From Isurus oxyrinchus (lineage: Eukaryota): DNA of 64,000 nt. The notes beneath the pieces are model-generated. The model made no database searches and was not told the origin of the DNA. It was given only the letters and a program-made list of their open reading frames with translations. The position numbers and the translations under genes were made by a program. Below are positions 3,739 to 52,093 of this stretch, piece after piece (the first letter of the stretch is position 1; each line of letters starts with the position of its first letter). The stretch lies in the NCBI GenBank assembly GCA_026770705.1, contig JANJGN010000041.1, positions 6,014,001-6,078,000 on the forward strand, read 5' to 3'.

Positions 3739-4603
3739 TCAGCTCCACATTGAATGAGTTTTAAAATCGTAGTGAAGGGGATATTTCAGCTGCTCTCTTA
3801 ACTTAGCCTGTGTTACTGTATAGAAACCAATGATTGCTGAGCAGCTTAGGAGCTGCAGCATGAAGCCTATTTCTCTCATATAAATAGGTGGATTTATAGA
3901 ACTGCAGCCCAAAGCTACCAACCACTACCAGAGGGAAAACATCGCGAAGACAGCCCATAACAAAATGAAATTGAACGGGATAATGTGCATTAAAATGATG
4001 TATCTCCTTCTACTCTCCATCTCTGGGTCTCTGGTACTCACCCCATTGCTGTGAATCAGGATACTCCTGCAGGATCTGCTGCTCACTAAAATATGCCTGA
4101 CCGTTAAAACATTGAATACTAGAATGGGGAAAAATGCAATGAAGCATCTCGATTTTGCCCATGCCCTTGAATATACAGCATCCACTATCACAACACAAAA
4201 CCAGAGGAAATTCATCTTCCATTACTCCGGGGTATACATAAAATACCAATATTGAAACAGCTCAACATACTGACTGCACCCAGAACCACATGTGCAGTTT
4301 TCTCAGTGTAAGTTTCGTTCTCAGCTTACTGCAACAAATAGCCACAAATCGATTGAAAGTATAACGACAGTGAACCAGACAGAAGAGTCTGTGACTGCAT
4401 AAAGCAGAAGAGTATCGGAGTTACACACAGACATTTAAAGAAGAAACATAAACTCGAGAGTATAACCAGTTGAAAGGTGCCTCAGTATGAGATCGATGAA
4501 GAGGACAAGCAGATCTGCCCCTTGCAGGCCACAAAGTAGTAAGTGACACATTTCGAGAGGCCACAATTTCCCCGAGAAATGATTACTATTGTCAGCACGT
4601 TAA
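3739..4603 (-). pseudogene. GPR139/GPR142-like 7TM receptor pseudogene, exon 2
   Basis: Acceptor 'cccccttcctcgcag|' at 4604. Reads VNVLTIVIISRGNCGLSKCVTYY, ADLLVLFIDLILRH, VTDSSVWFTV, TFNRFVAICCSKL, FNVLTVRHILVSSR, DPEMESRRRYII, GFMLQLLSC, TQAKLREQLK. Disabled by frameshifts (about 4525, 4361, 4308, 4250), in-frame stops (TAA about 4435, TAA about 4222, TAG about 3925) and a TM5 deletion. Confidence 0.93.
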
Positions 4604-5368
4604 CTGCGAGGAAGGGGGACAAACATTTCCATTATTCTTCAGGCAGGAACGAGTTGCCAGCTGAACAGAATATGGCTGAATATTGGAAATGCCTTGCTGT
4701 GCCCAATTATGTCTTCTAACTCTTGTGTCCATGACACTGCTTTCCTCCGGAGAAAGGTGTTTTCTTTAAATATTATTGAATACTAAATGTTTAACATTAT
4801 CAGCGATGGGGGTTTCTATCAGCAAAAGTTGCATCTCAAAATGAGTTACGAATGTGGCAAAGCTAACTTAATATAATCTGAACACAAACAGATGAGACCA
4901 ATGCCACTTGGAAGAATGAAGCTAACCCTCAATCAACCAGTCAGATTAAAGCTCTGCGTTTCTGTAACATCAAATGTTGGGTTCATTTAAAAAAAAAAAC
5001 AATCAACTGACCAGAGGAAGTGGCTGTGCACTCATTCACATTCTCAATGATCTGAGCCCACAGCAGGTTAGCACAAAATACCCAGCTGCAAGATTTGTAA
5101 ACATATTCCGACAGAAGGACTAGGTGGTTGATCCATCCTCCTCAATTGCCCTGAATCACCGATGCTTGACTGAAGCTACTTCGATTCACATGGGTTATAT
5201 CAGGGGAGATGTGAGCTCACTGGGCACAGCAAAAGCCCCAGAGCTGACCGCATCTCTGCCACAGCATTGAGGACTTGTGCCCCAGAATTAGACGCAGCTC
5301 CATCCAAGCTGCTGCAGGAAAACCAGATGAGAGGAACCTACAGGGAGAAGTGGGAAATTGGCCTGTTA

Positions 5369-5531
5369 NNNNNNNNNNNNNNNNNNNNNNNNNNNNNNNN
5401 NNNNNNNNNNNNNNNNNNNNNNNNNNNNNNNNNNNNNNNNNNNNNNNNNNNNNNNNNNNNNNNNNNNNNNNNNNNNNNNNNNNNNNNNNNNNNNNNNNNN
5501 NNNNNNNNNNNNNNNNNNNNNNNNNNNNNNN
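5369..5531. other. Assembly gap (N)
   Basis: N run. Confidence 1.
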
Positions 5532-5544
5532 CAGAAGCTCGCCA

Positions 5545-5559
5545 CCCACACACACACAG

Positions 5560-5590
<31 letters not shown>

Positions 5591-5858
5591 GAAGGGAAGA
5601 ATGGGATTGATCTCGTTCATCAACAGTGTGATGTAATGTGTGAGTAACACACACACAGGCACACACACAAACACACACTCACACACCCACCCCACACACA
5701 CACGCACNNNNNNNNNNNNNNNNNNNNNNNNNNNNNNNNNNNNNNNNNNNNNNNNNNNNNNNNNNNNNNNNNNNNNNNNNNNNNNNNNNNNNNNNNNNNN
5801 NNNNNNNNNNNNNNNNNNNNNNNNNNNNNNNNNNNNNNNNNNNNCACCCTCACACACG

Positions 5859-5890
<32 letters not shown>

Positions 5891-5892
5891 AA
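5545..5892. repeat. (CA)n microsatellite complex spanning a second N gap (5708-5844)
   Basis: Direct reading; a ~35-nt spacer (aagaa.ggaagaa.gggattga.ctc..tcatcaaca) occurs twice, at about 5589 and 5895. Confidence 0.9.
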
Positions 5893-6651
5893 CAAAGAAT
5901 GGAAGAACGGGATTGACCTCAGTCATCAACAATCTGATGGAATGTGTATTTGGTCGTGAAAGCTGGCGCCAGTTGCACAGTTGAAACCTGGGGAATGCGT
6001 CTCACTCTGTATTCATCTAAGACCAGTGGCTGGCAGGCGTCATTGCAGCCATGGGCTTAACAGGGCGGAAATAATCAATTAAAGAAAAATGACTGGCAGT
6101 GACTGTCCATGAATTCAGGCCGCATTTGACACTATTTGGGCCGGCAGTCCGGAGAAAGGGAAGTGCTTTGGGTTGTTTGAGGCTAAGTAACTGCTCCTGG
6201 AGTCCCTCCGGTTAGTACCATAGTCGCAGACATCATCAACTGCTCCTGCAATGGCTTTCCCTCAATCATAAGTGCAGGAGTTTCGTTGTTCACTGAGCAT
6301 TGTACATTGCACAGCTCTATTCCTCATTCGTGGAAAGCTGAAGTGGAACTTCTGCACTCACAGTACTGCACAGGCAAAATTGGGGCTGATGCTGGTCAGG
6401 TTTGACAACATTTGCAACACAAAAATTGCAGGCAATGCCTATCAGTAGCATTCGATGATTATATGGTGTTTAGTGCAGAGAGTTAAAGAAGTGCAAGAGT
6501 ACTGCAGCGAATGGTAGCTTTTGGGAAAATTACTGGATACAGTGTCTTACCAGGAACAGCAATAACAGTGAAGAGAGGAGCCATTCAATGACAGGGACAC
6601 CAATAAAATAACAAATGTCTGAGAAAAACAATGCTGCGTGCAGAAACTTAC

Positions 6652-6748
6652 CAGCAGCTGCAAGAGCAGCGAACAATGGATAGTAAATTTCGTGAACCAC
6701 ATAGAGGAACATTTCAATCCTCAAATCCAGGGAATAACCCAGATGCAT
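6652..6748 (-). pseudogene. First coding exon of a GPR139-like receptor (likely partner of exon 2 at 3739-4603)
   Basis: MHLGYSLDLRIEMFLYVVHEIYYPLFAALAAA + G|GTAAGT. Phase-1 donor at 6651 matches the phase of the 4603 acceptor; IYYP TM1 motif. Confidence 0.8.
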
Positions 6749-7079
6749 TCTCTGCCCCTTGGTGGAGCTCCTGGCCTTGGATAGAGCCGGTGCTGATGTT
6801 CACAATGACAGTCAGAAATAGCAGTTTGGACTGGTTTTCCCTAATAATATCATTGAATTCCTCTGGTGGCAGAGTGAGTGTCCTTCCGGGGGTTGTTGAC
6901 GGGTGGAGCGGGGGGGGGGGGGGGGGGGGGGGGGGGCGGGGCGGGTGGGCGGAGTGGCGGGGAAGGTGGGGGGGGGGGGTGGTGGGGGGGGGTGTTGGGT
7001 TGTGATTCTCATTTCTGTTAAAATGGATTAGATCAACCCTGTTCAACACTACCTGACTATTTTGCAAACCTTACAACTG

Positions 7080-7270
7080 TATTTATATTATGTTTAACTG
7101 GGCGTGAAAAATCTCAAAACACAATCCTCAATACTCAACGGCAGTGATTGGTTTGAGTGACAGATGTGGCCTTCACTGACAAACAGTTACAGAGACAGAG
7201 AGACGATAAAGTACTGATAAGTTGACACAGCACGTCAGCCCCAATAAACTCAGCCAGCACCCGGAAACAG
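7080..7270 (-). promoter_or_regulatory. Candidate core promoter of the 6748 exon
   Basis: Minus-strand TATAAA (7082-7087), GGGCGTG box (about 7100), CCAAT (7147-7151) next to TGAGTGACAG (PBX/PREP-type decamer, 7154-7163), CACGTCA and CCGGAA sites further up. Confidence 0.3.
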
Positions 7271-7959
7271 AATTAGCTTTAATAACCTGATCATTCATCT
7301 CTCATATGAAGAGAGTCGGGGTGAGGAGAGAGAGAGTAAGGATGGGGGGCTGGTGGGGTTGGGGTGGAGAGAGCAGAGCCCTGGAGAGAGGGCGCGGGAC
7401 CCATCATCAGCCCATCAGCCCTCTCTATGTAAAAAATTCTTGACTCTCCAAACCGCTCCGTCCTTGCGAGTGAATATCCCATCTCCAAACTCATTTTCTC
7501 TCCAAATCTATTCAACATGATGTTCACACCGTTTCCCCAAAATCCCATCTTTCCCCAGTTTCCCCTGTACCACATTTCCTATGCCCACTAACGATGACGT
7601 TCCACTACCACAGAATTTCCTCTTTGCTCATGCTAAGGAAGCCTCCTATTGGATTCAGATAACCGCCTCGGTAACTGAAGGGAGAAGGATCTGGAGGGAT
7701 GGGCAATAGGTCACACATGGGTTAACGTGAATAACAGAGGGCTTCAGGGGTAGGAGAACACAAGGATGAGCCGCAAGGTTGCAGTGGGGCTGAGGTGGCG
7801 TTGCTGATGGGATTGAGCAGAGAGGGGAGGGTTTTGACCAGGGTGGAAATAGGCTGATGGTTTGTGGCTTTTCTGAAAGGCGGAGAAAAGGCCTAGTAGA
7901 GTGCGAGGGGTGAGACAGAGGAACGAGGGAATCCTGGTGTGATGCACGGTCGAGGGAAC

Positions 7960-8870: not shown

Positions 8871-8919
8871 TAGTTTAATTGGAACGGTGCTGGGTGGTTG
8901 CGGGTCTGTTTCTGCTCAG

Positions 8920-9257
8920 ATGAGATAAAGTATCTCAATCCCGCCAGGTGAGCACTGACCACTTTCTTGTTTATTTTTTTCTTTTCCTTTGCCCACCGAA
9001 GACGTGTTCCGGGACAACCGGAAAACACATTTAACAGGACGTACAGAATGAGGATAAACTGCGGCCTGATGAGGCTGCAGCGCTTGTATGACTAGGCCTG
9101 CGGGGCAGAGTTCCCGGCCATCTGTGAGAAGACGACCATCCGCCTCCACCTGATCTTCCAGCGAATGATGCAGAGCCAGCGAAGGAACGCTGGGCTGGCG
9201 TCCGCTCCATCATTCCTACCGTTGCCTTTCATCTTGTGGAGGGTGGCAATTTACTAG
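8920..9257 (+). pseudogene. C-type lectin domain terminal exon (9002-9257) with a preceding short exon (about 8920-8947); one in-frame stop
   Basis: Polypyrimidine tract + AG at 9001. A single frame reads RVPGQPENTFNRTYRMRINCGLMRLQRLYD*ACGAEFPAICEK...: GQPxN, NCG, xxD..C and ICEK are CTLD hallmarks. TAG at 9093-9095; terminal TAG at 9255-9257. Confidence 0.62.
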
Positions 9258-13316: not shown

Positions 13317-15261
13317 TTTTCTGTGCTGACGACTGTCTGTCAATTTGAAACTCGGACGCAATGTTCCCAAAGACATTAATTTATACGCTGTGGATCCTCT
13401 GAAATATTGAGGTTGCAACATTGTTCATTTTTTTTTTAAACTGAGCTAACAGATTCCAGCATTGATTGCTGTGGTAGAATTGGTTGCATTTTGGTTTCTG
13501 AACTGGAGTTGCAAATGTCACTTCTGATCACATTAATCAACTTAGAACATTAGAGGTGTATTCTATACCAAATGCCGCTGTTCACTCAAACAGCAACAGT
13601 CTCATCTTCTGATTTCTTTCTGTTTCAGTGATATCTTTTATGTGGATGTGAGCATTCAATAGTTTCTGATTTCGGGATATTCCAAAGCAGTTTGCGGTGT
13701 CGATTCTCCTTTTAATCTGTATGTTCAGTTAAGTGATTAATGTGGGATATTACTGACTATGCAGTGTAAAATTCAGAAAATATTATATCTGGATCTAATT
13801 CAATACCACAAAAAGCCTACACACCTGATCAAGTCAAGCTCCCAAACTAATAATATGCAGTAATGCAATATCTCACCTCAAAAAATAAAGCCTCTCAAAA
13901 GGGTAACAATAATTTCAACCAATGCAGCCGCCAGAACTGATAAAGTTTCAAAAGCTAATGCATTGACTAACAGCAATCTAGCACTCCAAGTTATAGAGGC
14001 CTGAAACAGATACAAACTGCCAGCTGTTAGAAACTATACAAATATTGCAGAGCTGTCAAATCCAGGATTGAGGGGATGATTCCATGGAAAGCGTGAAGTT
14101 TCCTCTGTAGATTGGGGGCTGAGGCAAGCAGGTTTGGGGGGGGGGGGGGGGGGGGCGGTTGGCACTGGGTGCTTTGGGCAGGCAAACTCAGTTTTGATGT
14201 ATGTTATTCAGAAGGTCAGGAATGCATCAGAAAGACTGTTGGGATCCGATTGGATGAAGGCCTCTGATATTGCCGTGGATCTTTGTAATCACTGCTTCTG
14301 GAGCGGAACAGAAGAGGACAAAGACATTTTGCATAATGGTTTCAGCTGAATAGATGCTTCTTTGAGCCAGTGCAGAAACCATCAGTAGAAGGACCCCAAT
14401 CTGGCTGCAACAATGAAATGATTCTTTCATTAAGTCATTTGTTTAAGCAGAGACGTTTCAGGAAATATTTCATAGATGTGCTCAAAATCATGATTGATTT
14501 TGGCAGAGTAAAGTTCAGCAGCAGAAGAGGGTACACGGGGTAGAAACTGAGGGCAGGTGATTGCTAAATTGCTAAAGGTACCATGGGCTGTGTCGGGGTG
14601 CTTTCCCGATGTACAACGTGTTGTTGTGATGCTGAATTTGATACCAATAATGGTTTTTCATTCAAGTATGAGTACTACGAGTCAAATGACAACAAAAATA
14701 GGATAATGACAATGCAAATTGTGGAGTAATGGGAACGAACGGAGAAATTGTATTAAATGAGGAACTCTTTCAAAGAGTACCACACACATTATACATATTG
14801 CATTTCATCTGTGCTTGAGTGCCCCAATGGCATTTAAATTTCTTCCGCAGCCTGTTAATAGCTCCTGATACTTGTGCACCCAGAACTCGGCTCTCTTGTT
14901 CACTTGCAAATATTGAAGCCCTTCAGCTTCTTCAGACCCTTTGCCGATTTCAAACCGCCCTGGGCTGCACTTGGACTTTCTGGACAAAAACAATCAGAAT
15001 GTCAGCTTCAGCAATCAGGTCAAACATAAAACTGTAATTAATCATTCATGTTCATTGGGCGACAAAAGCAAGCACGTGTGGACCAACATTTACAATTCAT
15101 AGGTTGACCCAAACTGTGGATTGTTTATTTTTATCTATTGTAGATAGCACCCCTTTCAGAGTGAACCTTATTGCGGCAGCACCATCTATGCATGACTGTG
15201 GCTACACAGCCACGTGAAGGTCAATGTTGTCGCTCATCTTTCAGAACAGGCGGGTAATAAG

Positions 15262-15617: not shown

Positions 15618-16219
15618 AACAAAAACAGAATTACCTGGAAAAACTCAGCAGGTCTGGCAGCATCGGCGGAGAAGAAAAGAGTTGAATTTTCGAGTCCTCA
15701 TGACCCTTCGACAGAACTTGATTTCGAGTCCAAGAAAGAGTTGAAATATAAGCTGGTTTAAGGTGTGTGTGTGGGGGGCGGAGAGATAGAGAGAGAGGGG
15801 GCGGTGTGGTTGTTGGGACAAACAAGCAGTGATAGAAGCAGATCATCAAAAGATGTCAGTGACAATGGTACAAAAGAACACATAGGTGTTAATGTTAAAG
15901 TTGGTGATATTATCTAAACGAATGTGCTAATTAAGAATTGTTGGTAGGGCACTCAAGGTACAGCTCTAGTGGCGGTGGAGGGAGCATAAAAGATTTTAAA
16001 ATATTTAAAAATAATGGAAATAGGTGGGAAAAGAAAAATCTATTTAATTTATTGGGGAAAAAAAAGGGGGGAAACAGAAAGGGGGTGGGGATGGGGGAGG
16101 GGGGGGGGCAGCTCACGACCTAAAGTTGTTGAATTCAATATTCAGTCCGGAAGGCTGTAAAGTGCCTAGTCGGAAGATGAGGTGTTGTTCCTCCAGTTTG
16201 CGTTGGGCTTCACTGGAAC
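15618..16219 (-). mobile_element. Penelope-like retroelement, 5'-truncated (GIY-YIG C-terminus + 3' pseudo-LTR)
   Basis: Minus frame SSEAQRKLEEQHLIFRLGTLQPSGLNIEFNNFRS*; terminal repeat nearly identical to 28605-28700; CTGGAAC at both junctions (15614-15620, 16213-16219). Confidence 0.88.
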
Positions 16220-21204: not shown

Positions 21205-21500
21205 AAAGAGAGAGAGAGAGAAATGGAGGTAAGGAGAGAATAGAGAGAAAGACTGATAGAGAGAGTGGGGAGATAGATTAAAAGAGAAAACGATGGAATG
21301 AGAGAGGGAGGTAGACAAAGAGAGAGAAAGAGACAGACAGAGAAAGAGAGAATGCGGGGGTGGGGGGGGGGGGGGGAGGGAGATCGACAAAAAGAGCGAG
21401 AGGGGGAGATAGAAATTCAGACAGAAAGAGGGAGAAAGAAAGACAAATGGGGAATATAATATGTGCAGATAAAGGGACAGATAGAGAATAAACTAAAGAC
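21205..21500. repeat. GA-rich low-complexity tract with poly-G
   Basis: Direct reading. Confidence 0.85.
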
Positions 21501-21544
21501 TTGGATGAATATAATTTCAATAACTGGAAAGGGGTAAAACACTT

Positions 21545-21760
21545 TCAGGCCAATGTGGTCATGTCCAATATTCGCCAGTGCTGAAATCTAGGACAAGTGA
21601 CAGCTGATCTGTGCACAGGAAGATTCCAGCAGCAACGCCATAAATCTGGGAAACCTGATTTAGGTATGTTGGTCGATGGATAAACATTGGCCCCAGGGCA
21701 CCAATGAGTGCTCCACAACTCTTTCCCCAATAGTGGTTGTGGGAGATTTGGGATCCAGTG
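21545..21760 (-). mobile_element. DeuSINE-like SINE fragment
   Basis: Similar to 43060-43450 ('gcacag.aag.ttcc..cagcaa', 'ttggcc..gg.cacc'). Confidence 0.4.
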
Positions 21761-22517: not shown

Positions 22518-23315
22518 TGTTACGGGAAATTATTTTTAAAATTGAAATTCTAGTGACAGCCTGTGTCTAGGTGTTTGTCTGTGTGTGTTTTCGTTATAAT
22601 AAAGGCAGCTGTTCTTGGTGCTTTGATGTAAAACAATTTTGGAATGTTAATTAGCGAACTGTAAGAATAACATTAACATAAAAATGTCCACTTGCTTTTG
22701 TTCAGAAAACATTCATGGTGGGGGTAAAATTTTGCACCTGACTAGAAGAAGCCACCAAATGTGTTTTGTTTTCAGTTTACTAATATAACTGGTGATATGA
22801 AAGGGTTTTTATTGTCATAAGAGCTGAAGTTCAAAAGACCTTATGATACAACGGGAAATTTATATTAAAACGGAAAAGCTAGCTATATACATAAATGATT
22901 TTGTGCTTGTCTGTAAGGTAGTGGAATTTAAGACATTCCCATCCTCTCCAACCAACTTGCAAATCAAACTCATTTGGAATTTGTAAGGTCCATTATGCTT
23001 TGCCTGGTGTCTATTCAATTTTTATGCAGTTATTGTTGTCATATTGAAGATTTGCCTGTGGGTGATTAATTTGGGAATTTGTTGAAATGTATTATAGTGG
23101 TGAATTGCAACCATATATTTGTGTTTAATTTGTTGTTAAGTTAATTAATGTTTAATTTAGCTTTTTATGTAAATCTCGAGACTCGGTATTCTCATTTCTA
23201 TTAAATTCAAAGTCTGCATTTCTAAATAACAAACTGCACAAATGGGTCACGACAATTGTTTCAAGTTTCGCTGTCGGATTTCAATCACTCAGCCTTTACC
23301 ATTGCCTTTGTCACA
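22518..23315 (+). mobile_element. Solo LTR nested in the Gmr1-like element's 5' region
   Basis: TGTTAC...GTCACA termini; 4-bp TSD ATAG (22514-22517, 23316-23319); homologous to 25285-26086. Confidence 0.7.
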
Positions 23316-28559: not shown

Positions 28560-28760
28560 AACAAAAATAAAAACAAAAAACTGCGGATGCTGGAAATCAA
28601 AAACAAAAACAGAATTACCTGGAAAACCCAGAACGTCTGGCACCATCGGGGGAGAAGAAAAGAGTTGACGTTTCGAGTCCTCATGAACCTTCAACAGAAC
28701 TCTTTTCTTCACTGCCGATGTTGCCAGACCTGCTGAATTTATCCAGGTAATTCTGTTTTT
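28560..28760. mobile_element. Penelope pLTR-derived hairpin (about 62-bp inverted arms) enclosing a hammerhead-like core
   Basis: Arms 28605-28666 and 28698-28760 are reverse complements; the minus-strand loop reads CTGTTGA-AGGTTCATGAGGACTC-GAAA-CGTC. Confidence 0.8.
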
Positions 28761-28779
28761 CTTTCCTCTAAAGAACATC

Positions 28780-30849: not shown

Positions 30850-33800
30850 GTTTTGTATGTGTCTTTATATAAAGCTTACCAAACAATCTAAAGATACCAC
30901 ATCGACCAGCTCCCCTGTATCAATTTGCATAATTGTATACACAACATGTACCATCAGATTGTTTAAACATGATTTCCCTTTCCTAAATCCTTGTTGCCTT
31001 TTCTAAATCCTACCATTTTTATCGAGATATCCTGTTATCACATCCTTTCTTATAGATTCGAACATCTTTCCTAGTAGTTATGCAAATATGAAAGGCTTGT
31101 CGTATTCCCTTTAGTCTCTAACTCCTTTCTTAAATAGTAGGGTTAAGTTTGACACTTTTCAATCTCTACATCTTCCTGAGAATTTTGAATGGTTGTCACA
31201 AATGCATTTGACATCTCGACTGCCACCTTTTATCAGCCCTGCTGCTTAAGGATCATTAGGCCCAGTGTGATAATGCACTTTAAGTGCCATTAATTTCCCG
31301 AATGCTTTTTTTCTCACTTGAATTAAAATCCAACAGATCCTTTTTTTATCTAGCGCTCTGCTTGTCAATCATTTTTGGGATTGGTTAGTATTTTTCTCCA
31401 TGATGACAGACACAAAGTATTTTTTAAATTTGATATGTCATTTCTTTACTACATGAAATACATTCTCCTGACTCTGCCATTGAACATACATTTATTTTTG
31501 GTAATCTTTTCATTTAATTTACATTGAGGAGCATTTCAGAAATTTATTTTGTTTCTCGCTGGTTTATTTGTATGTTCCCTTTCTTATTATTTTTATTGGT
31601 CCTCCTTAGCAGAATTCTAAAATGCTCCCAAATCTCAGATTTACTATTTATCATATAGGCCGCGTAACCCCCAACTGCCCTCCCCCACGGTTTGAAGAGT
31701 TTCCTTGCCAGACTTCTGTGCACTAAAGAAATGTCTTCCTGTTGTAAACTATGTATTCATTGCATAAATGTTAGCCATTGCTTGTCAAACTCCATACCTT
31801 TAGCAAAATTTTCCAATCTATCACAGCCAATCATTCTCCCGCCCCGTCCCCCTGAATTCCTTAACAGTCTCTTTGTTTATATTAGGACCCTTGTCTCTGA
31901 TTGGAAAACAGCACATTGAAACATTATAACATATTATGCTCACTCTTTCCTATTGGCCTGTTAACATCATGAGTACCAATGAGCAATGTTCAGTTGCACA
32001 AGTCTTGATTTGAAATAAAACGTGCACTATTTGAATGATCAACGTGCTGCTCTAGAAAATAATCCTGCAACTTTCCTAATAACTCATTCCCTAAAACATT
32101 AGAAGGAATCAGTTTTACCCACTCTGTACGTAGAGAGAAATCCCCCACAGTTAGATTTCTGTGCTTCATACCAGCATCTCTAATGTAATGATATTTTCAG
32201 AGACTGACATTTCCACCGCAATTTGTTGCAATATAAACAACTCACTGCAATATTTTCTGCTCCCTGCTTTCCGATAGTTGCACACAAACTGATGCTACAT
32301 TTTAACACTTAAAACACCGGTCATTTCTCAGCACAGTACAATGCCCTCTTTGATAACGAGAGCTATCCCAATAACTTTTCCCAGCTTCTTGTCCTTTCAG
32401 AATGTCACATGCCCGAGGATATTCAGTTCCCTGCATTGGTTTGCTTGTAGCCACGTCTCCACAATGTCTATCAGATCAGAAATATCAAGTTATATTTGAG
32501 ATTAGAATTCACTTGTTTTCATGCGAATGATGCTGGCATTCAAAATTAGAGCCATTAATTCATTGTTTTATTACCGTTTTTGCAAACACCGCCCCTTCCT
32601 GCTAGCACACTGCTAAGCTTGCAATTACTTCTCCTTACTTCCATTACCTGATTACCTTCACCTTTATACCTTTAATGATATATTTTCTTGCCATTTCCAT
32701 TTTACTTATTCCAAATGCACGAGATGATCTCTTCACCCTCTGGTCATTTTGAAACCATCTCTTCTCCAATTGAACTTTATCCCGCTGTTAATCTGCGGGT
32801 TTAAGTTTAGACTGCCCCAATGGCAAAACTCCCACTTTCAAAGTACTGGTGCCAGGGTGACTGAATCGGCACTCATTTCTCCTACAGTATTCTTTGAGAC
32901 ACGTATTAACCTTCCTAATTTCATTCACGTTACAGCAATTTTTATATCACACTGGTCATAGGCATAAATTGTTAACGTTTATCTTCTGCTGTTTAACCTC
33001 GTGCCTTTCTACCCCCAATCGCTATGCGGAAATTAATTCCTTCTTGTTCCAATCATTTTTGTACTTACATGGACAACGACCCACTGAATTCACTCCGTAC
33101 AACATAAAGCTCCTCTCCAGCCCGAGCAGGTCTCTGAGAAGCTACAAGCTTGGTGGTAACCCAGCAGCCTGGACTCATGTTTTCAATTGCAGTGAACACA
33201 ACATGACTGTTGCCTATCACTACTATATTCCTCTTCGCTCCACCCATTCGAAACACATTCCTCACTATTGTGTCATGATCAGTGCATTCATCTACCTTGC
33301 AGTCCTCCCCATTCGCAAAGCTTGCACGCACTTCATACCTTTTGAAAACGTCATGGACCAAGGTTCCTTGAAGTCTCATTGCTGGGTCCACTTAACCGGC
33401 AGACGCGCAGTCACCCTCCAGCTTCTGACTCCCGACCAATCCGAAGATCTCTCTAATGTAGGGGGAATGACTGCTTACTGGGGCAAATTGTCCAAGCAAC
33501 ATTTGCCCTCATTGCCTCCCCACAAATGCCTGACCATTTCCACAACTCATAAGCCCACTCAATGTATTCCATCGATAAGTACATTCTGCTAAAATTGGCC
33601 CACCAGCAGCCTGCAAATGCTGACACTGACGCTCATTTATTTAGCCAATTAGTTAATACTTTACAGAGATAAGTTCCCAGAATGTTGCACTCAGCTATAT
33701 TGGAGACGAGGAGGAAAACTGTCCAATGACCGGATGCTCATGAAAATAGGAAAAGAAACACGTCTTGACCTCACTTTCCCAAATTCCCATCTGATTCAAA
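30850..33800 (-). mobile_element. CR1 LINE 5' portion (ORF1 esterase-like, endonuclease, start of RT), decayed
   Basis: ORF 33065-33391 'KRYEV...TDHDTIV...KRNIVVIGNS' (GDS-type ORF1 motif); EN 'DLIDIVETWL' near 32460; RT 'QQGFRKGKSCLNNL' near 30970. Confidence 0.8.
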
Positions 33801-34619
33801 TTATCAACTGCTAAAGCAATCTAGATCTGTCTCAGATGTAGCCGCGTGCCTACATGGCCTTTTTGATGTGCACATTGAATAACCCTGTGTTGTTATAGTA
33901 CATCTAATGACTCACCAGCTAGCTCAGCATTCCCTTACGGCAATTAACATCTATTAGGAGAATCTATTTCAGGGACCTGGTGCCTATTTGCTGATGTGTT
34001 GCCCCAGAAAGAAGTCACCATGCTTAGGATTCGCACATTACCACAGGATGGTTTGGACATGCTGAATAATTGATAGCGGCGTCATTTCTGCACCAGTTCT
34101 TCAGCTTGGTCTGAAATGCTTGATGCTTGTACACTTCTCAATAAATCTTCCAAAAAGATACCACGTTGCCACCATGTTGTGCTCTCATTTTCAAATGAAC
34201 ACACCAAGCACAGGACAGGAATTGGTAAAACGATTTTCGACTTTTTAAACTTGGAAATACATGTAATTTGGTGAAAGGTGACCAAGGAAAATTACCGCTG
34301 ATTAGCGTCTAACATCAACAAACAGTGGTTGGATCACTTATCCGCCATGTTTAACATAAGTTGAAGATGGAATAAAGGTATGAACGACAAACAGTAGATT
34401 TGCTTGAGAAGTACACAAGCATCAACATTTGCAGATCTTTCCAATTGTATTCCGTATCCCTTTTTTCTTCACCGTGACAACATCTGAAAGACTTGAGAAG
34501 CCATTTCTGACCATCATTTAACACTTAGCAACGCTGTGAATCAGCAGTCACGTGCACGTTAGACCGAGTTAAGACGGAAAATGTCATTCCTTAAGCGTAT
34601 CAGATGGTTCGTCCGTACG

Positions 34620-36793: not shown

Positions 36794-37620
36794 CTAACAA
36801 ATTAACGATTATGCCACATTTGCAGAAAGTGTGGTCTCTCCAAATGTGACATTCAGCAAGTGGTGACTATGACAATGGCAAACCTGGTTTCCTCAGCCTG
36901 ATATTTCGAAACTTTCTGATTGTTTTCTAAAAAGCGTTTCGTTTCATGAACTCCAACCCCGTGTTTAATGCCAACACAGTCAGCCACTGATTTTTCTGAC
37001 TGGTACACAGTCACACGCATCATTGAAATCTCTGTAGCCTTTTGTTGGCAAAATCTGAAGTATGATATTGTGCTGGAGAAACAGCTGCTGAGCTTCGGGT
37101 AATAGTCAATTTTTTGGGGGCTGTTTTAGGAACCTTTCCTGATATTTATTTTTAGCACATGAGTATTGGCTGTTGCAATAAACCCGCTCTGTGATGAGGC
37201 AATAAATGACCCGCATTCTCATTCCTTGAGAATAATGGATTTCCTTAATCACATTCTAACCAGGGAGAGACCAGTTTCCCTGCTTCTACTACTCATTGGT
37301 TTCACTGTCAGGCACAGGTTACTGACCAGCAGAAGCGGCAGGAGACTCCGGGCTTTCAGGGAGATGGAAAATCGAAGGGAACCCAACATTTAATTTTTGT
37401 CCTCTCAATAAAATGCAGCTAGTTATTGTTAGCATTTATGCTTTATTATCTGTTTTGGCAGATGTTAGATGCGTTGTCCAATTTAACGCATCCAGACAAT
37501 TTAGCCAAGTAATTGACTTCATTCTGGAGCTCCTGTGTTGATGCACAATGATTTGCATTTATATTGTGGTTCAGAATATGTTGCGACTGCATTTAAAGAA
37601 TGTGCTGGGATATGATTAAA
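36794..37620 (+). pseudogene. GPR139/GPR142-like 7TM receptor pseudogene, exon 2, heavily decayed
   Basis: Acceptor 'tttctcttacacttag|CTAAC'. Reads KCGLSKC, ATDFSDWYTVT, VAFCWQNLK, DFLNHILT, FTVRHRLLTSR.GRRLR..REMENRR, LELLC*CT.ICIYIVVQ...LKNVLGY; many stops and indels. Confidence 0.85.
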
Positions 37621-38384
37621 ATAATGAAACACTGTTCGTGTGCAGCATTGTCCACTGCTACTTCAGGTTTTCAGTGTTTGGAGGGGCTTGCCAGCAAGGC
37701 AAATGTGGAATCGTGGGGCTGGTCGCAAATGGTAACATTGTCTGTTGAAGAATTGGGGTTTACAACATGAAGGTACCTCTCACTGATTAGACATCATATT
37801 ACTCAGAATAAGCACACTTGCATTGGGCAATCCACTGGTCGTATTCCCTTTCCCTTCACACCAATTGTACAAGGACCCCTCCCAGCAGCATCACCCGCCA
37901 AACCCAGCACCCCCATCCACCACACCCCCAAAATCCATTTAGCCGGCCCATGTTTCCAACCTAATGCATTCCACAATTGTCCATTGCAATATTGCACATA
38001 TTTTGGGGAGTGGTGAACTGAGTTAAACAATGCTCCGAGACATCGGCCTGTTATTATAGCAAAAATAGCAATGGCTTTACTGATGAACATGAACAATAAA
38101 TCTCACAAGGAAATTGTTATCCTTCAAATTGTTTTATTTGCCACAAGAATCGAATGTCAGCGACCAAATTCCTGGACAACATACCTGATCCGATATTTAA
38201 GGGGATTTGTCAGGCGAAATTCCCAGTTTTATTCGTGTTCAATATTCGTATGTATACATTCATTGCGTTTTTGAGTTTCTTTTTAAATCACAATCACCTT
38301 TTTTGCTTCAAGGTCGTCTTTGTCAATGATCCGCAGGGGACATTTTTTGCAAGAAGCACTTGTATTTCAGCCCTTGATGTTCTT

Positions 38385-40620: not shown

Positions 40621-41889
40621 CCGGGCTGTCACATATCCATGGCTGAGTTGGATTGTTTATTGACCAGTAAGGGAGACCAGGTTCATGAGGCTGTATGTTT
40701 GCGCTGTAAAGGAGGTGGCAGAAGGTTCCGGCGGAAGATGCTGGTTAGGGGAGAGCAGGCAGGAGAGTGTGCCTGAGGCCAGGATCAGATAAACCATGAA
40801 TTTTCCGTGTTGCAGAACAGGCCCAAGTGGTCAAATGATCTACTGATCTGAACTATTCTGTCTTTGGTGTTTGTTTGAAATGCAGCCCACACCAAAACAG
40901 CAGGCGCCGTCGATTCTGGTTCATTATAATCAGTGAAAACATCTGCTAATGATTGTCTTCTGAATAGATTTGACGGCCAACAGTTTCATGTTCAGATTGG
41001 ATTGCCTTTCCAGTGATGTGCTCTATATATGACATTAATTTTTAAAAACATTTTTTCATTCATTTCAAGCATCACTCTGCACTATTGCACATCAAGACAC
41101 CAACAACGCCAAACTCGCAGGTCCAACGGTTGTGTTTATAATTTCCAGCCAGAATGGTACAAATTTATGGGCAACAACAGAGAATGCAGGTCAAGTCACC
41201 GGCAGAAGTGTCAGTGCCAGAGGAAAGATCTGGGCAGCGTATGAGTTCCTTCTGGAAGCTTAAATTTCAAAGATAAACATCACACATATGCAGTGTTGGA
41301 ACATAGAATGTTTCCTGAAACACATGACAGTGGTGAGAATCTGAAATTTACTCCACTACCTCTCCTAGCAGTTCAGGCCTATTGAGCTTCCTGGAATCAT
41401 TTTGATCTAAATTAGTATTGATTTGATTCCCGACATCGCTGTGTAGGTCAATCATTTCCCGACGTGACTATCCACTATGGAATCTACTGGTTACTCGGTA
41501 AAATATAGCCCCTTCCATTTTATTGACCTCGCACATCATTACATTGTTTGACGTTTCATTTCGAAACGGTTCCTTTCAGAAGGAGAGTGACTGATGTAAC
41601 CTGTTTGTTCAATGACTGAAACTAATTGATTTCTTCAAGGGACATGAATGCGCTCATGGGGATTTATCTGCTGTCTACATAACAGCTTCTCTGAATGTCA
41701 CATTTCATATTTTCCAACAGGCTTGGTGTTTGTGTTTCAACAGGAGTTAGATCCTCTCTCAGTGGATATACTTTGTTGTACTTCATCAGATACAAGCCAT
41801 TTACAAATCCGTTTTCGAGCTCTCGTTTTCCAATGTACGTTTATTAACATGACTTCGGACTAACAATATGAATTATTGTCCTTCTTTTC

Positions 41890-42170: not shown

Positions 42171-42424
42171 AACTAAAGGGCTTAATGTTAGGTAAAGGTA
42201 ACAGCTTTTCTCTGTTCACTGCTAGGAATCATGTCGTGCTAGTTCTACCCTGATGCTCTAGGTTAATTAATGTAGCATTTGCTTCCGAAATTCCTGTGAT
42301 TAAAACGTGTTTCTATTATTTTCCTGAGCTAAATTTAAATAAGAAGAGTATTTCTAAATTTCAGAACAGACGTTCATTCCACCTTGTGCATACATCTCTG
42401 CAGGAAAGGCGCTTCCTCATAAAG

Positions 42425-42494
42425 ATGGGAGAAAAGATACTTCGCCAGATAGAAGCCATTTTCTATCCTATTCTTGTGGCAATCGGTGTTCCTG
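42425..42494 (+). CDS. Intact GPR139/GPR142-like 7TM receptor, coding exon 1
   Basis: aaagATGG context; MGEKILRQIEAIFYPILVAIGVP + G|GTAAGA; 70 nt, phase 1, joins in frame to 51189. Confidence 0.88.
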
Positions 42495-43450: not shown

Positions 43451-44289
43451 TCCGATCTTTGAACACCTATGCTCCCCGAATAGTTATCTGGTTCTCATTA
43501 TTCTGCTCATTTCAGTTTCTAGCCCTCCACTTCCTGGTGTTGCAAACCTGCTGCCTAATCTAGCTTACTTAAATTGAGAATTGCAATGGATTGATATATA
43601 GCATTGTCGCACTCCCCTTTGGCTTTGGGAAACCCACGTTGTCATATTACATGGTGGCCCTGACAGAAGGATATAGCAGCACAGGGAATACGAGTAGAAG
43701 TTGATCTTTTGGCTGCACAACGGTGCTCCACTACTCCAGTCTATGATGACTGGAGGTATGTCTCCCCGACATTCCACGCACTATCTCATATCTTTGGATG
43801 CATTCAATATTGCACATTTGGTTCATCAGCACCTGCAAAATACTTAATGACTGCCGATCTTCCGAGGTTGCAGTACATAATTTCGAACATTTACCCCTCC
43901 CTGAGTGATGAAATTCTTCCTGATCTCAGTTCTAAATGCAGACCTCCTTTTTTGATGCTGCTTTTTCTGGTTTTAGACACACCTACCAACGGAATCATCC
44001 ATCCAAGATCTACAACAACGAAACTTATAAGAAGCGTGAATGCTTCAGGGAGATCACTTCTCATTTGCCAATGCTCCAGAAAGCAGAGGGGGGGGGGGGG
44101 GGGGGGGGCGTCAATGTATCCATAAGGCAATCCCAGTTAAAAACCAGTAATCCAATAAGTGATCTATTGAACATTCCTTATCGCAGAGCTACACAACACC
44201 TAATGAAATCTCCACCAAAGGAGCAAAGTAGAATGCTTGACAGGCATCACAAACATCATCATAAACAGACCACATGAAAATTGCAGAGC

Positions 44290-46620: not shown

Positions 46621-49600
46621 GTGGACATCTGCCAGATGTCTGCCATGTTCTGTCGTTTCTGAACTTGACCTCAAAAGCCAGGAAGGACAAGAACAGAAGA
46701 GGCATGGCAACACTCTTAGTTACAAAATCCTTTCCAAGTCACACAACAAGATGACTTGGAATTCGATCAACGTTCCATGACGGTCACTGGATCGACAACC
46801 CGGAAATCCATTGCTAGCAGCATTGTCTCTGCACCCCCTTCATATGGTCAGCAGTAGAAGAAAACCTTTACATTCAAGAAGACTTAGTGAAGGCGGAAAT
46901 GAAAGTGCTAATCATATCAAAATATAAAAAGAAAATAAAATGCTGCATGATGACGAATATATGAATATTGATTTCCTTTTTGTATTGAAATGACGGCCCT
47001 GGCTGTTTCATTTGTTCCAACTCAACAACTCAACACAATGCATTTTGAAATGTAAATCATTTCAGATAATACTGGCCCCTAACTGCGAACGTATATTTTG
47101 TATTCACTTCTGAATAGCTAATCATTTAACACAAAAGTATTGGCTGAAAATTTATCAGCAAATCGCCCCCCCTCAATGCCATCCCCCCTCATCTCCCAGA
47201 AGGCCCATTCCCCACCCCACACAGAAATGCCAAATCCGCTTGAAGATCAATGATGTGAATCGGGTTTCATGCCATCAGGTACGTGAATCTCCCAGTTGCA
47301 GATGAAGAACGGGCCGGGCAGGAGGAGAGGGAAAAAAATGTTTCTGGACATCTACCATCAGCGATGAATCTTGCCAAAGAGATGTTCTGCCTCTGGGGCC
47401 ATGATTAAATGTAGCAACAGATTGTGCTGGGGAAGGTGGTAGCGCCTTCCGGTTTACTTATCATTTTTTTTGTTTCTTGCCTGAGCTTTCAACGAAAAAT
47501 GTTTTTGGAAAAACAGTTTCTGTGAGCAGGTGGACTTGAGCTTGCAGCCATACCGACTTTATGTTCACAGCATTACAATCTGCCACATCATGTTGAGGCT
47601 TTCACTGCCAATTGGATGCGGACCCATTTTGCATCACTCAATGCCTCCTCCCAGTAGGAATTTAACGAATTGTGGAGCGGGAAGTGGTCTTAGAGAGGGT
47701 GAGTAGGAAAGGGCTGATTTTACATTTCTCCAAACTCATGCTGCCGAACAACGTAAATTCAAGGCCGCTCTCTACTTACGGTCATGTTTCTTTATGATTT
47801 TATGTCACGATTAGTGTTTTGTACCTGCACCGGAGGATTTGTGTCGCTTCTCCAGTGTAACTGCCGCTATGGAGCCTGCGGCAATGGGTCATAACTACAA
47901 ACACAATTCAGTGGATCACACTCAGTTGTGCGTTCGCAACAACATTCACAAATTCGCTGAAATAAATTATGAAATGAATATGTCATTGAAAATTGTTATT
48001 TTGTACGTACATTGCGAATAGAACATTTCTGTTAAAGTGATATGGATTCGGCACCCTGGTGGAACCTCCTTTGCTCTGCAGTTCTGCAGACTCGGGTGGT
48101 TGCAGTAAGGACACCAATAGGCACATAAGCACTGCTCCTGCTCCATGTTACTCTTCCCAAACAGCAATTAACAACAGGCCAGAAGCAGATTGCAGTTGCA
48201 GAGAGCAATGGGTAATTCTGTAGCATATATAAATATTCATTTCACTGGTTTATTTAGCAGTGAGTAATGTTGATAATATATTTGTTGCCTGTATACTTAA
48301 TTTGCTAGCAGAATAGTGGACAATGGTTTGGATACGTCATTATTGAATTAGGCAGATAATTGGTAGTTCATTCCTCCGGCATTTCAACGTTTAATTCTGA
48401 GGAAATTTCTGGAAATATACTGATAATTTATTGGATAATAGTATTGATAATTAATTTGTTCATACATTGGCTGATTCATTATATAATTGTTTAAAATACT
48501 GTATTTTTATAACTGTATGCTTTTTTAGATTGCTGGCAAGTACAGTTTCAAGTGCTGATAATTTGGCGACAGTCTTTGTATAATTCACAATAGCGCACGG
48601 AAAATTATGTCTCTCATTTTAAATGCATGTTATTGAAGTAATATATGTATTAGGTTTGCTCAAATAATAGTATGTATCGGGTAAAGGAAGGTATATTTTC
48701 AGTTTTAACATTTATTTTAAGCTGCAATTGTGTCAAAATAATGTTGAATTATAATCCTTCCACCTTTAGCACTGCATCCTGCATGGTCAAGAGAAGGTCA
48801 AACTTTAATTTGTATACATTGCCTGGCGTTTTCAAGGCTGTTTGTGACAGCTCTATTAAGTCAGTCAATGTTTGCTGCTTGCATTCCAGCTAGAGCATTG
48901 TGAATTGGAGGCTGCCAACTGGGCTGTGTATGTAACAGGAATAGATTTTTTTTTTTGTTTGTATGGTCTATGCTTGCCAACTTGAAATCTGATCCAAAAA
49001 TATAAAAAGCCTTATCCGACTAATTCGCCATACTTCATTCAAAGTTCATCTGAATCATTAACCAACAATTTACTGAAATAATATGATCCAAATTGTTACT
49101 TCACCACCACGTTTATAGTCGTTCAATGCATTGTTGTTTCCCGAAGTTCAAATTTGCAAAAAATCTACGTTCAGTTTGCACCATGTTGCACAGACATGAA
49201 ACCAGTTGGTACTTGAAATAACTTTCTATCCACTCATCCCCTTATTTTGACAATGTTCACTATCCATTCACTAATCTGTGCCGCCCCAATCCGACTGCAG
49301 ATTCCAATCAGAAAGCTATTCTGCGCCCTTGCAGAGCCGTGACATCCTTTCCCATAGCATCGCCACCAGAACTACAAACAAAATTTCGGTAGGGAGCAGA
49401 TTGCATACTTTCGATAATAATTCAGTCTGGAGATATTTAACTTGCTTTGAAATGCCGAAAATAATCTAATAAACGTGCGCATCAAATTATTACATATCTG
49501 GCAGCTACAAATTTGTTCAATGAGATTCACTTAGAAGATATATTCTACAAAATTCAAATGGACCTTTACTAAGTAAACAACAGAAATCATAATGCAACCA

Positions 49601-50128
49601 GGAATATCTGTGGCTCACGTCAATTTTGCTTGATTTATATGGATCATTTAATTCCATCAGTAATCAGCATAAATGAAGTTAATCTTCTGTATAATAAGGT
49701 AGCATTGAATAACTTTGCTAATTATCTAAAGGTGTTCCTGCATTTTGAAAACAAAAAATATACTTTTTAACAAATAATGCTAAGTTTTATGGGTTTTATG
49801 TACCTGGACAACCTGAAATGAAATAAGGATACAGGATGATATTTTAAAAATGGGTGTGTTATGTCCTAGGTCTTTATCCCCAGGTAATCGACAATTCGTA
49901 TTTTCACTTTTCTGAACATATATTATTCGACAGACTCAAATCGGTTTGCCAGTTACAGTCATTTTTTACCGCAATCTTCTGCACGGTGCAATGCAAAAGT
50001 TAATTTTCAGCTTTACATTTCAAATCATTTTGCACGGAGGCTGTATATAAGACACAAGCGACTCCCTTCTGCCCTTTCAGCAGCAAGGTGATTTGTTCTG
50101 TAGCCGATCAATTAACAGGAACTGTCTC

Positions 50129-51010
50129 ATGTCTACCTGGAAGCAAAACGATAGTTATGATCTCACTAGAATCACATCATCAAATTGCTCTTTCAGTATG
50201 TTTTGCAGTAGGTGTGCCCTTGTGGCTTATAAATATTCCCCACTCAATCTGACAGCAATGCCACTGGTCCAAGTCAGCCGTTAAACTGCTCGTTTGATCA
50301 GCACTGACTGCACCCATTCTGCAGAGCAATTTTGCTTCCCTCTTTTCGCAATGTTTTAGCGATGCATTCACCTGAAATAATCCTGCACAATGCCCAGACA
50401 GCATATCAATCTCACATTACTCAGTCTGCCTTAAAACACATGGCTGATCAGCTCTCATCCCCGAATAAAACTTCTCCCTGGGAACCTGCATAAGATTTGC
50501 ACCTTGTCATTGTACCGCCGCTTTGATGAAGCCTGTGTAAACTGGCATTCGGACTCATCTGTGCTGGTCTTTTAAATAGCTCAGTGACTATTTTCTGTTC
50601 CTGTGTCTTTACCATCCCATCTTAACCCTCAGAAGCGTTTAGAGAATGTTTGTTCCCCTGGGCAATATTTTACTTTCAAGTTGTAACTCCTGTAGCACCG
50701 TAATCCTTCCCAGTACTTATGACATCTTTAGACCACCCAAAACGCATTGCACCACTAGCTCTTCAAAAGCATATCTCTACTTGGCCCAGATTTTATTTTG
50801 TGCATTCATTTCCAACTTCACATTGCACAAACACACATGAATTGGCACTTTACACCTTCCATTTACCTTTTAATATTCACCATGCTCAGACGTTTGTGTG
50901 CATTCAAGTTGTCCAGGGCACATTCACCATCAGCAAAATCAATTGTTATTAAACAATAGTTGTGCAGTCTACGTTGAAGATGTTCCTTCCAAAAAGCGCA
51001 TTATCAACTG
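50129..51010 (+). pseudogene. Candidate ancient, apparently intronless GPR139-like remnant inside the intron of the intact gene
   Basis: AVGVP + 13 aa + CHWSK (same spacing as spliced IGVP..CGLSK), FVPLGNILL (TM5-like), ILFCAFISNFTL (TM6-like), QLLLNNSCAVYV (TM7-like); TATATAA at about 50045. Confidence 0.33.
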
Positions 51011-51188
51011 ATGTTTCCCGTCCCTATCCGAATTCATTAGGTCCATTTTACATTTAGAACCTGCTCACCTCGGAAAGCAGGCTGTGCATAATTGGCTCAA
51101 AGGCAAGATGCTTTGCTGCAACAGGAAGGAAATTAATCATGTTCATCTGTGCCATCTATCTCCTGCTCTCTCTATCCCTTTCTTACAG

Positions 51189-52093
51189 TTAATGTTCTTG
51201 CTATTGTGATTCTTTCCCGGGGAAATTGTGGCCTCTCCAAATGTATTACCCACTATATGATCGCCATGGCCACGGCGGATCTCCTGGTTGTTTGTGCTGA
51301 AGTCATTTTGAAGAATACGCTGAATAATTATTTCCCTGCTTCCTTCTTGACCATGAGCACAGTGTGCCAACTAACTGTGACACTGACTTATGCGGTCACA
51401 TCAGCCTCAGTCTGGTTTACTGTGGTGTTCACCTTTGATCGTTTTGTGGTCATATGTTGTAAGAAACTTCTAAAAAAATATTGCACGGAGATAACCGCAG
51501 TAGCTGTCATATCAGTGGTGAGCATGTTGTGTTTTTTGATAAACATTCCCTGGTACTTTGCATTTGAACCTGCGTATGTAATGGACAATGTAAATCATGG
51601 TTGTGTCCTAAAACAGACATTTTTAATTTCTGCTGAATGGGCCGCATTTGACTTGTTTACCATTACCTTGACCCCATGTGTTCCATTCATTCTAATTTTG
51701 TTGCTAAATGTTTTGACGGCAAGACGTATTTTGGTGGCGAGTAAAGTTCGCAGGAGTCTCTGTAGTTGCAGCAATGGAGAACATCACAAAGATTCTGAAA
51801 TAGAAAACCGAAGAAAGTCCATTATTTTACTGTTCAGTATAACCGGCAGCTTTATACTTCTCTGGACAATTCCAGTTATATACTTTATCTCTCTGCGTGT
51901 ACAAATCATATTGAATTATTGCACAAATGAGCTTGAGGCAGTTGGATCCATGCTTGGGGGCCTCAGTTGCTGCATAAATACATTCATTTACGTTCTGACG
52001 CAGGCTAAGTTTAGGGAGGAGCTGCAGAGCGGAATGCAGTACCTTGTGAAACTGTGTGTAAAAATAGGCAAATCACAGCTGAAATCCCATTGA
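51189..52093 (+). CDS. Intact GPR139/GPR142-like 7TM receptor, coding exon 2 (spliced product 324 aa)
   Basis: Pyrimidine tract + CAG at 51186-51188. Open 905 nt with seven hydrophobic segments: AMATADLL (TM2), TVC and TFDRF (TM3), NIPWYF, ECL2 Cys, PCVPF (TM5), FILLWTIP (TM6), CCINTFIY (TM7), helix 8 KFREEL. 70+905=975 nt. Confidence 0.95.

Follow-up and report, generated by a model that had tools for sequence, protein, structure and literature searches.

The window analysed here is a 64-kilobase (kb) stretch of vertebrate-type DNA from Isurus oxyrinchus (assembly GCA_026770705.1, contig JANJGN010000041.1, positions 6,014,001 to 6,078,000, forward strand; GC content 0.42, CpG observed/expected 0.50) that carries several members of one seven-transmembrane receptor family. 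Searching its six-frame translation with a family hidden Markov model (HMM), trained on 82 of the 120 closest database proteins (305–350 amino acids), we found four receptor places: 51182-52072 (+), 4610-3757 (-), 36824-37619 (+) and 38100-38285 (+). The first belongs to an intact gene. The other three, namely two copies that we call A and B and a faint remnant, have decayed, as judged by the HMM and by stop counts. An earlier note on this DNA had described this anatomy (an intact gene, two pseudogenes and fainter remnants of one seven-transmembrane family), and the family HMM, the splice sites and the stop counts confirmed it. Exons were never joined in this work: the searches, alignments, trees and the variability test all ran on database proteins or on the translated exon 2 by itself. 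The features are as follows.

42263-42343, plus strand: promoter-proximal AT-rich elements ahead of the intact gene, visible in the sequence itself
42425-42494, plus strand: exon 1 of the intact gene; ATG, 23 codons and the first base of a split Val codon
42495-51188, plus strand: intron of the intact gene; 8694 nucleotides (nt), phase 1, GT...AG, split codon G/TT (Val)
51189-52093, plus strand: exon 2 of the intact gene; rest of the first transmembrane helix through helix 8, 300 codons and the stop
52296-52301, plus strand: first AATAAA downstream of the stop (+203 nt), which by pattern match may be a polyadenylation signal
6652-6712, minus strand: exon 1 of copy A, intact; ATG at 6712, 20 codons and G, donor GTAAGT
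4604-6651, minus strand: intron of copy A; 2048 nt as assembled, holding both N gaps
3757-4603, minus strand: second exon of the copy A pseudogene; matched by blastx and, in pieces spread over three frames, by the HMM (E = 1.3e-43)
36824-37619, plus strand: copy B, an older pseudogene; two HMM pieces, nine stops, 5' end no longer recognisable
38100-38285, plus strand: faint remnant covering the first intracellular loop to transmembrane helices 2/3 (ISQGNCYPSNC...); HMM E = 0.0022, 62 codons, no stop

The intact gene is a two-exon class-A (rhodopsin-like) G-protein-coupled receptor (GPCR) gene. Exon 1 reads MGEKILRQIEAIFYPILVAIGVP plus one base and encodes the N-terminus and the start of transmembrane helix 1 (TM1; the other helices are numbered likewise); it scored 41.6 bits to the basking-shark protein P0001 in tblastn with family N-termini, and E = 1.1e-7 with an exon-1 HMM. 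Its donor is G/GTAAGA, with the GT at 42495-96, and the acceptor consists of a polypyrimidine tract and an AG ending at 51188; the N-terminus of P0001, MGELILRQIEAIYYPIVAAIGVPVNVV, agrees with this exon junction. The open reading frame (ORF) tested within the intron (43709-44122) had no Pfam match. Exon 2 lies in the longest ORF of the window (51149-52093, +), in a frame that is open from 51137 to the stop at 52093. It matched Pfam PF00001 (7tm_1) with 70.3 bits against a cut-off of 30.5 (E = 2.4e-19, profile positions 2-260 of 260) and the family HMM with E = 1.7e-133 (51182-52072). By arithmetic (23 codons, the split codon and 300 codons) rather than from a built sequence, the product has 324 residues; more family proteins have this length than any other (30 of 120).

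The product carries the motifs RGNCGLSKC, DRF, NTFIY and EIENRRKS. In alignment A1, which consists of 59 of the 120 listed proteins and the window's exon 2, the intact gene keeps all 37 invariant columns. N25, D54 and D107-R108 are invariant and C83 and C162 nearly so; we read these as generic class-A core positions, namely the TM1 asparagine, the TM2 aspartate, the end of TM3 and the cysteine pair joining TM3 to the second extracellular loop (ECL2). Upstream of the gene, TAATTA-type sites stand at 42263 and 42297, and a TATA-like sequence, TTTAAATAAG, stands at 42334, 91 nt before the ATG. A shared promoter of the window's two first exons was considered and rejected, as no similarity was found between the regions upstream of exon 1 of the intact gene and exon 1 of copy A.

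Copy A has kept its first exon, which reads MFLYVVHEIYYPLFAALAAA plus G, although the HMM score of this exon alone is weak (E = 0.72). Exon 2 contains at least three frame changes, and its main frame of 261 codons is interrupted by five stops; copy A is therefore a pseudogene. Its acceptor has the same position and phase as that of the intact gene, so the phase-1 intron in TM1 to which the earlier note had pointed is found in both. The same note had listed an extra first exon. That exon is present (6712-6652, minus strand), but it is not extra: a pattern search of both strands, for (I/L/V/M/F)(Y/F/H)(Y/F)P followed by 8–11 residues and then a phase-1 donor, returned exactly two exon-1-like sequences in the window, ending at 42494 (+) and 6652 (-), and the second is thus best read as copy A's own. 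Two further exon-1-like matches, at 41778-41804 (E = 4.1) and 33950-33991 (E = 0.26), were not significant with the exon-1 HMM. Near 13.4 kb, too, both the pattern search and the exon-1 HMM came up without a family-type first exon and phase-1 donor.

Two N gaps (5369-5531 and 5708-5844) sit between the exons of copy A and touch neither of them, and the family HMM found no receptor-like coding sequence between 4610 and 6652. The pairing of the two exons and their distance of 2048 nt hold as assembled across these gaps, which affect no reading frame. A GT/CA microsatellite, visible as CVCV/THTH translations, flanks both gaps (5217-5984) and is probably the cause of the assembly breaks. About 190 nt upstream of exon 1 lie a G homopolymer and a G-rich array of 13-mers (6901-6994; C-rich on the strand of copy A), which may have disrupted the copy A promoter.

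Copy B is represented by two HMM pieces, at 36824-37390 (E = 2.9e-18, seven stops) and 37434-37619 (E = 1e-6, two stops), and retains RKCGLSKC and EMENRR. The remnant at 38100-38285 had blastx matches to 9 of the 120 family proteins, with 31–40% identity among the eight best shown, and on its sequence is a borderline member of the family. Weak tblastn matches at 13543-13740, 21475-21570, 23017-23091, 33409-33495 and 57808-57861 were unconfirmed by the family HMM and are attributed to chance.

The best blastx identity to any of the 120 listed family proteins was 80% for the intact gene, 40% for copy A and 33% for copy B. No duplicated blocks join the receptor copies at the DNA level; self-blastn of the window gave only five short repeats, none of which links receptor copies, ruling out recent tandem duplication as the origin of the copies. 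Given this lack of duplicated DNA and the identities of at most 40% for copies A and B, the cluster is old and its members come from different lineages of the family: one gene is intact, and two copies and the remnant have decayed. None of the ten longest other ORFs of the window had a Pfam match, including matches to transposon domains.

The family itself is very large. The exon 2 product matched 1251 proteins at E ≤ 1e-3 in a database clustered at 90% identity. All 120 listed best matches come from 15 elasmobranch species, with 51 from Heterodontus francisci, 41 from Heptranchias perlo and the others from catsharks, whale shark, smooth-hound, sawshark, basking and white sharks, skates, rays and electric ray. 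The intact gene is 79–80% identical to one Cetorhinus and one Carcharodon protein and at most 62% identical to the others of the 120. In an exhaustive search of representatives of clusters at 50% identity, 99 were matched at E ≤ 1e-30, 148 at E ≤ 1e-10 and 580 at E ≤ 1e-3. Twenty of these clusters were sampled (E from 7e-81 to 9e-31): 17 are from elasmobranchs, one is from Callorhinchus milii and two lack an organism name. The Callorhinchus protein, P0152, is 46% identical and carries QGMCGLSKC, DRF and NTVIY. The family thus spans the cartilaginous fishes. With the species-only clades described below and the dead copies in the window, these counts bear out a large, clustered and pseudogene-rich family.

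The motifs that the earlier note had seen in the window turned out to be family-wide. In the first intracellular loop (ICL1), CxLSxC occurs in 115 of 120 family proteins and the strict form R-x-x-CGLSKC in 86; DRF occurs in 118, N(T/S)xxY in 115, and E(M/I)E(N/S)RR in 61, or 104 in a looser form. The double-cysteine ICL1 motif was found in none of 21 and none of 47 proteins of the two sister genes introduced below, and on these sequence counts we regard this motif and DRF as signatures of the expansion.

The listed family proteins are nearly all automatically named 'probable G-protein coupled receptor 139', as the earlier note had expected of automated annotation, and their models vary from 265 to 543 amino acids, with many odd lengths or fusions. 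The ESM Atlas returned only clusters with the same automated name and unrelated invertebrate GPCR clusters. Full-text literature searches, as far as the texts retrieved extend, found no published description of this cartilaginous-fish expansion. Public annotation already lists the genes, though under an automated name that misleads; this window is an ordinary example of the family's clusters, and the interest lies in the family as a whole.

GPR139, of which GPR142 is a close paralog, was the obvious point of comparison. Human GPR139 was the best match among solved structures (43–45 bits, low identity, E = 1.3e-10), followed by the prolactin-releasing-peptide receptor (E = 8.3e-6). Like the family, human GPR139 (PDB 7VUG/9M42) is a class-A seven-transmembrane receptor with a short N-terminus and without the NPxxY proline (NFFLY compared with NTFIY). 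The earlier note had singled out DRF and NTFIY in the intact gene; both are present, but the missing proline is not special to the shark family, since human GPR139 also lacks it. Unlike the family, GPR139 has DRY in place of DRF, and nothing like CGLSKC in its ICL1. GPR139 is a highly conserved brain gene whose product is a receptor for L-Trp and L-Phe (PMC12208981), whereas the shark family comprises hundreds of divergent copies. According to the earlier note, GPR139 may have its intron at the same TM1 position. Orthologs of GPR139 or GPR142 would be expected once per genome and conserved across vertebrates; the family has 1251 matches, with dozens per species among the 120 listed. The similarity to GPR139 also falls well short of that to two other vertebrate genes: the intact gene scored 113 bits to a coelacanth gene, here gene (i), and 110 bits to a salamander gene, here gene (ii).

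Gene (i) (the P0223 group), a conserved GPR139-like gene of jawed vertebrates, had 145 matches at E ≤ 1e-5 and scored 70 bits to human GPR139. It occurs in catshark, zebra shark, sawshark, coelacanth, sturgeon, bichir, bowfin, many teleosts, amphibians, turtles and squamates, most species appearing once or twice among the matches listed, and the catshark protein is 66% identical to that of coelacanth. Its length is similar to that of the family, and its ICL1, R(R/K)NCMLS(K/R)S, resembles the family's RGKCGLSKC, but the four members inspected have ERF and the gene forms a separate clade with its own shark orthologs. Some of its models are fused to TMEM183A, and models P0276 (Stegostoma) and P0374 (Hyla) are annotated as 'transmembrane protein 183A' isoforms, which suggests that TMEM183A is a genomic neighbour of gene (i) and would be a useful synteny anchor. 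A 2019 Ensembl survey lists 'GPR210A/B' as unassigned GPR139/142-like orphans of coelacanth, gar and fishes (PMC6504862); the word 'shark' does not occur in this survey. Our guess is that gene (i) is one of these orphans (Ensembl identifiers unmatched).

Gene (ii) (the P0226 group, from frogs, salamanders and a caecilian) is automatically named 'probable GPR139', and each species appears once among the matches listed. It had 25 matches at E ≤ 1e-10 and scored 53 bits to GPR139. The amphibian proteins are 66–74% identical to the Pleurodeles query and a sturgeon relative is 46% identical; the next matches after these are members of the shark family, at 32–33%, so that the relation is reciprocal. 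Gene (ii) shares with the family an N-terminal (F/Y)YP motif (20 of 21 proteins), but differs in having DRY in all 21 and no ICL1 cysteine motif.

We built two maximum-likelihood trees (quick IQ-TREE runs with an amphioxus outgroup and with species labels entered by hand from the listings), one of 94 rows and one of 71, the second omitting the long-branch sequences P0257, P0264, P0265 and P0266 and 27 family rows of the first. P0266 had been considered as a true GPR139 outgroup; this was rejected, as it scored 60 bits to human GPR139 and falls in the gene (i) clade. In the 94-row tree the cartilaginous-fish family is one clade with a support of 95 (SH-aLRT, an approximate likelihood-ratio test), which contains species-only clades of Heterodontus and of Heptranchias and also mixed shark and ray clades. 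The intact gene joins Carcharodon and Cetorhinus (support 100) in a nine-row clade (98) within the family clade, and the second tree agrees. In both trees the family groups with gene (ii) (SH-aLRT 99), and gene (i) with its three shark orthologs forms a separate clade (support 99); the split of the family and gene (ii) from gene (i) and amphioxus is independent of the root. Two chimaera-type rows were placed inside the family without support in the 71-row tree. As part of the overall reading given below, these trees and the bit scores above point with high probability to a family that forms a separate branch of the GPR139-like group, sister to gene (ii) and distinct from GPR139 and gene (i).

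We then compared variability on the two faces of the receptor. An AlphaFold model of the basking-shark relative, made with a 60-row alignment (pLDDT 80.7, a predicted local accuracy; pTM 0.79, a predicted template-modelling score), has seven TM helices, an ECL2 hairpin and helix 8. In alignment A1, column entropy was 1.59 bits on the extracellular side and 0.79 bits on the intracellular side (Mann–Whitney p = 9e-14). The most conserved elements are ICL1 (0.20) and the inner half of TM3 (0.28), and the most variable are the third extracellular loop (ECL3; 2.57) and the outer halves of TM7, TM1, TM3 and TM2. For gene (i) we took the 93 proteins of 300–375 amino acids among 120 listed, and for gene (ii) 20 amphibian proteins, the partial sturgeon protein being omitted. 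The three sets compare as follows.

Expanded family: 59 rows, mean pairwise identity 0.63, extracellular/intracellular entropy ratio 2.01 (p = 1e-13)
Gene (i): 93 rows, mean pairwise identity 0.59, extracellular/intracellular entropy ratio 0.99 (p = 0.5)
Gene (ii), amphibians: 20 rows, mean pairwise identity 0.75, extracellular/intracellular entropy ratio 0.53

In gene (ii) the extracellular side is thus more conserved than the intracellular side. As neither conserved sister gene has an extracellular bias, the bias of the family is not generic to such alignments. At similar divergence, the intracellular side is also tighter in the family (0.78 bits) than in gene (i) (1.31 bits). The same tendency is seen between the intact gene and the basking-shark protein, whose 63 differences affect 37 of 134 extracellular and 26 of 161 intracellular positions (Fisher p = 0.022). 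A conserved intracellular and a variable extracellular face, which the earlier note had read from the window's few copies, therefore hold for the 59-row family set when compared with both controls, and at the protein level this bias supports a ligand-diversified repertoire evolving by birth and death.

Several repeats lie elsewhere in the window. A 46-nt tandem unit (2.3–2.4 copies) occurs near both ends, at 3174-3282 and 61361-61472, in apparently opposite orientations; the long ORFs at 2968-3387 (+) and 61289-61672 (-), which have no Pfam match, run through these repeats. A repeat of about 100 nt (90% identity) at 15618-15718 and 28602-28701, with an adjoining inverted partial copy at 28698-28763, is most likely a short interspersed element with no relation to the receptor copies. 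At 62161-62228 the window carries a (TATA)n microsatellite, repeated 17 times.

Taking the locus and the family together, we consider it likely that the window represents a single birth-and-death cluster within a very large class-A GPCR family specific to cartilaginous fishes. The family would be the many-copy counterpart of amphibian gene (ii), which has apparently one copy per species and a relative in sturgeon. All members appear to share a near-fixed cytoplasmic face (CGLSKC in ICL1, DRF, the cytoplasmic ends of TM3 and TM6, and ExExRRKS) and hence probably one transducer. Copies seem to differ from one another mainly in the outer halves of TM2, TM3, TM6 and TM7 and in ECL2 and ECL3, the ligand-binding regions of class-A receptors, so each paralog would recognise a different ligand. 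Such a repertoire would most plausibly sense external or diet-derived chemicals.

Several points weigh against this explanation. No RNA run containing exon 2 was found among the sequencing runs searched, and four small runs with the same species label, compared with 49700-53600, gave a single 31-letter piece at 53139-53168 and nothing on the gene, a result that is uninformative. The designation 'intact' rests on the open frame, the splice sites and the conserved residues only. The trees contain no true GPR139 or GPR142 and their amphioxus root is assumed; the node joining the shark and ray family to the chimaera has a support of 72 in the 71-row tree, and the join to the salamander gene in the 94-row tree carries a long-branch warning. 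The alignments draw on the family proteins closest to the query (60 rows, the window's exon 2 among them, taken from the 120 listed), the assignment of positions to the two faces comes from one AlphaFold model in which each helix was halved and each loop assigned to a side, and the variability evidence is at the protein level only. In Foldseek, finally, the model showed a generic class-A fold, with SSTR2, NOP and ETB first, opioid receptors among the closest and GPR139 at rank 27.

If the automated names were right, these genes would be plain GPR139 or GPR142 orthologs. GPR139 is indeed the best solved-structure match (E = 1.3e-10, compared with 8.3e-6 for the next) and shares the absence of the NPxxY proline, but 43–45 bits to the human protein and hundreds of paralogs in a separate clade do not fit orthology, nor do the DRY of GPR139 and its lack of CGLSKC; moreover, genes (i) and (ii) are closer to the family (110–113 bits) and are themselves 53–70 bits from GPR139. 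On these comparisons orthology has next to no probability and is effectively refuted for GPR139, in line with the earlier note, whose reading excludes a one-to-one relation. It is also very unlikely that the expansion is largely genomic inflation without function, driven by duplication or repeats, with the window's gene merely undecayed so far. Three of the four family pieces in the window are dead, many database models have odd lengths or are fusions (265–543 amino acids) and the runs searched gave no transcripts, all of which would fit such inflation. However, the intact gene keeps 37 of 37 invariant residues, canonical splice sites and a full-length frame, and proteins about 80% identical to it occur in two other sharks; no Pfam transposon domain was matched by the ten longest other ORFs, and the copies share no duplicated DNA blocks. 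An intracellular half tighter than that of gene (i), at 0.78 compared with 1.31 bits, would in addition require purifying selection on many copies.

What such a repertoire detects is a further question. The family could be an odorant, taste or other external chemosensory repertoire of cartilaginous fishes, with sparse expression of one or a few receptors per sensory cell. We hold this possibility tentatively, at less than even odds, as a more specific form of the birth-and-death explanation that does not contradict it. OR, TAAR, ORA/V1R and T2R repertoires are likewise large and clustered with pseudogenes, and have lineage-specific clades and a variable pocket on a conserved scaffold; the shark family has pocket-side variability of this kind, which is absent from the sister genes. 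Among animals, the very large expansions of class-A GPCRs known to us are nearly all chemosensory. The family differs from these repertoires in being related to them only through the class-A fold (Pfam 7tm_1, not 7tm_4) and in having its coding region split by the TM1 intron, whereas OR coding regions are usually single-exon. The TATA-like and TAATTA sites upstream of exon 1 may fit a chemosensory gene; the dissimilar upstream region of copy A counts against it, as does the failure to find the gene in the RNA runs searched. For catshark, the genome paper reports 2 canonical OR, 6 OR-like, 3 ORA, 3 TAAR and 2 TARL genes, most of them not olfactory-enriched (PMC11979771). The expanded family would make up for the very small OR, TAAR and ORA families. 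The 50 catshark genes most specific to 'brain & olfactory epithelium' include no GPCR (PMC11979771), a weak counter-argument, as bulk RNA dilutes chemoreceptors. We regard it as doubtful that this family supplies sharks, rays and chimaeras with their main odorant receptors, having arisen from a GPR139-like gene conserved in amphibians and being expressed as one receptor per olfactory or other chemosensory cell. It is unlikely that the family serves internal signalling (neural, endocrine, gut or immune), with diversified endogenous peptides, amino-acid metabolites or pathogen-derived molecules as ligands, in the manner of chemokine, formyl-peptide or MRGPR-type expansions. We know of no internal ligand set in vertebrates that would match a family of 99 clusters, and the RNA runs searched support this role no better. 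In its favour, the closest folds are peptide receptors (SSTR2, NOP, ETB and opioid), but the fold ranking was rejected as non-discriminating because E-values stay within a factor of 40 over 50 matches. Also in its favour, the nearest named relative is a brain receptor for L-Trp and L-Phe (PMC12208981), and catshark genes of the canonical olfactory families are often expressed outside the nose (PMC11979771), so that receptor expansions in sharks need not be nasal. Overall, the earlier note's interpretation of the locus as part of a chemosensory repertoire is partly supported.

As a lineage-specific expansion evolving by birth and death, the family is of interest beyond this locus. Cartilaginous fishes are known for acute chemical senses, yet three of their four classical olfactory receptor families are very small (PMC11979771). 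The family is a concrete candidate for a new vertebrate repertoire for sensory or other ligand recognition. Its point of origin appears clear, a GPR139-like gene that amphibians still keep, and it would therefore offer a clean system for the study of how a conserved receptor becomes a repertoire. If the odorant reading is true, it would explain how these animals have a keen sense of smell despite a handful of OR, TAAR and ORA genes.

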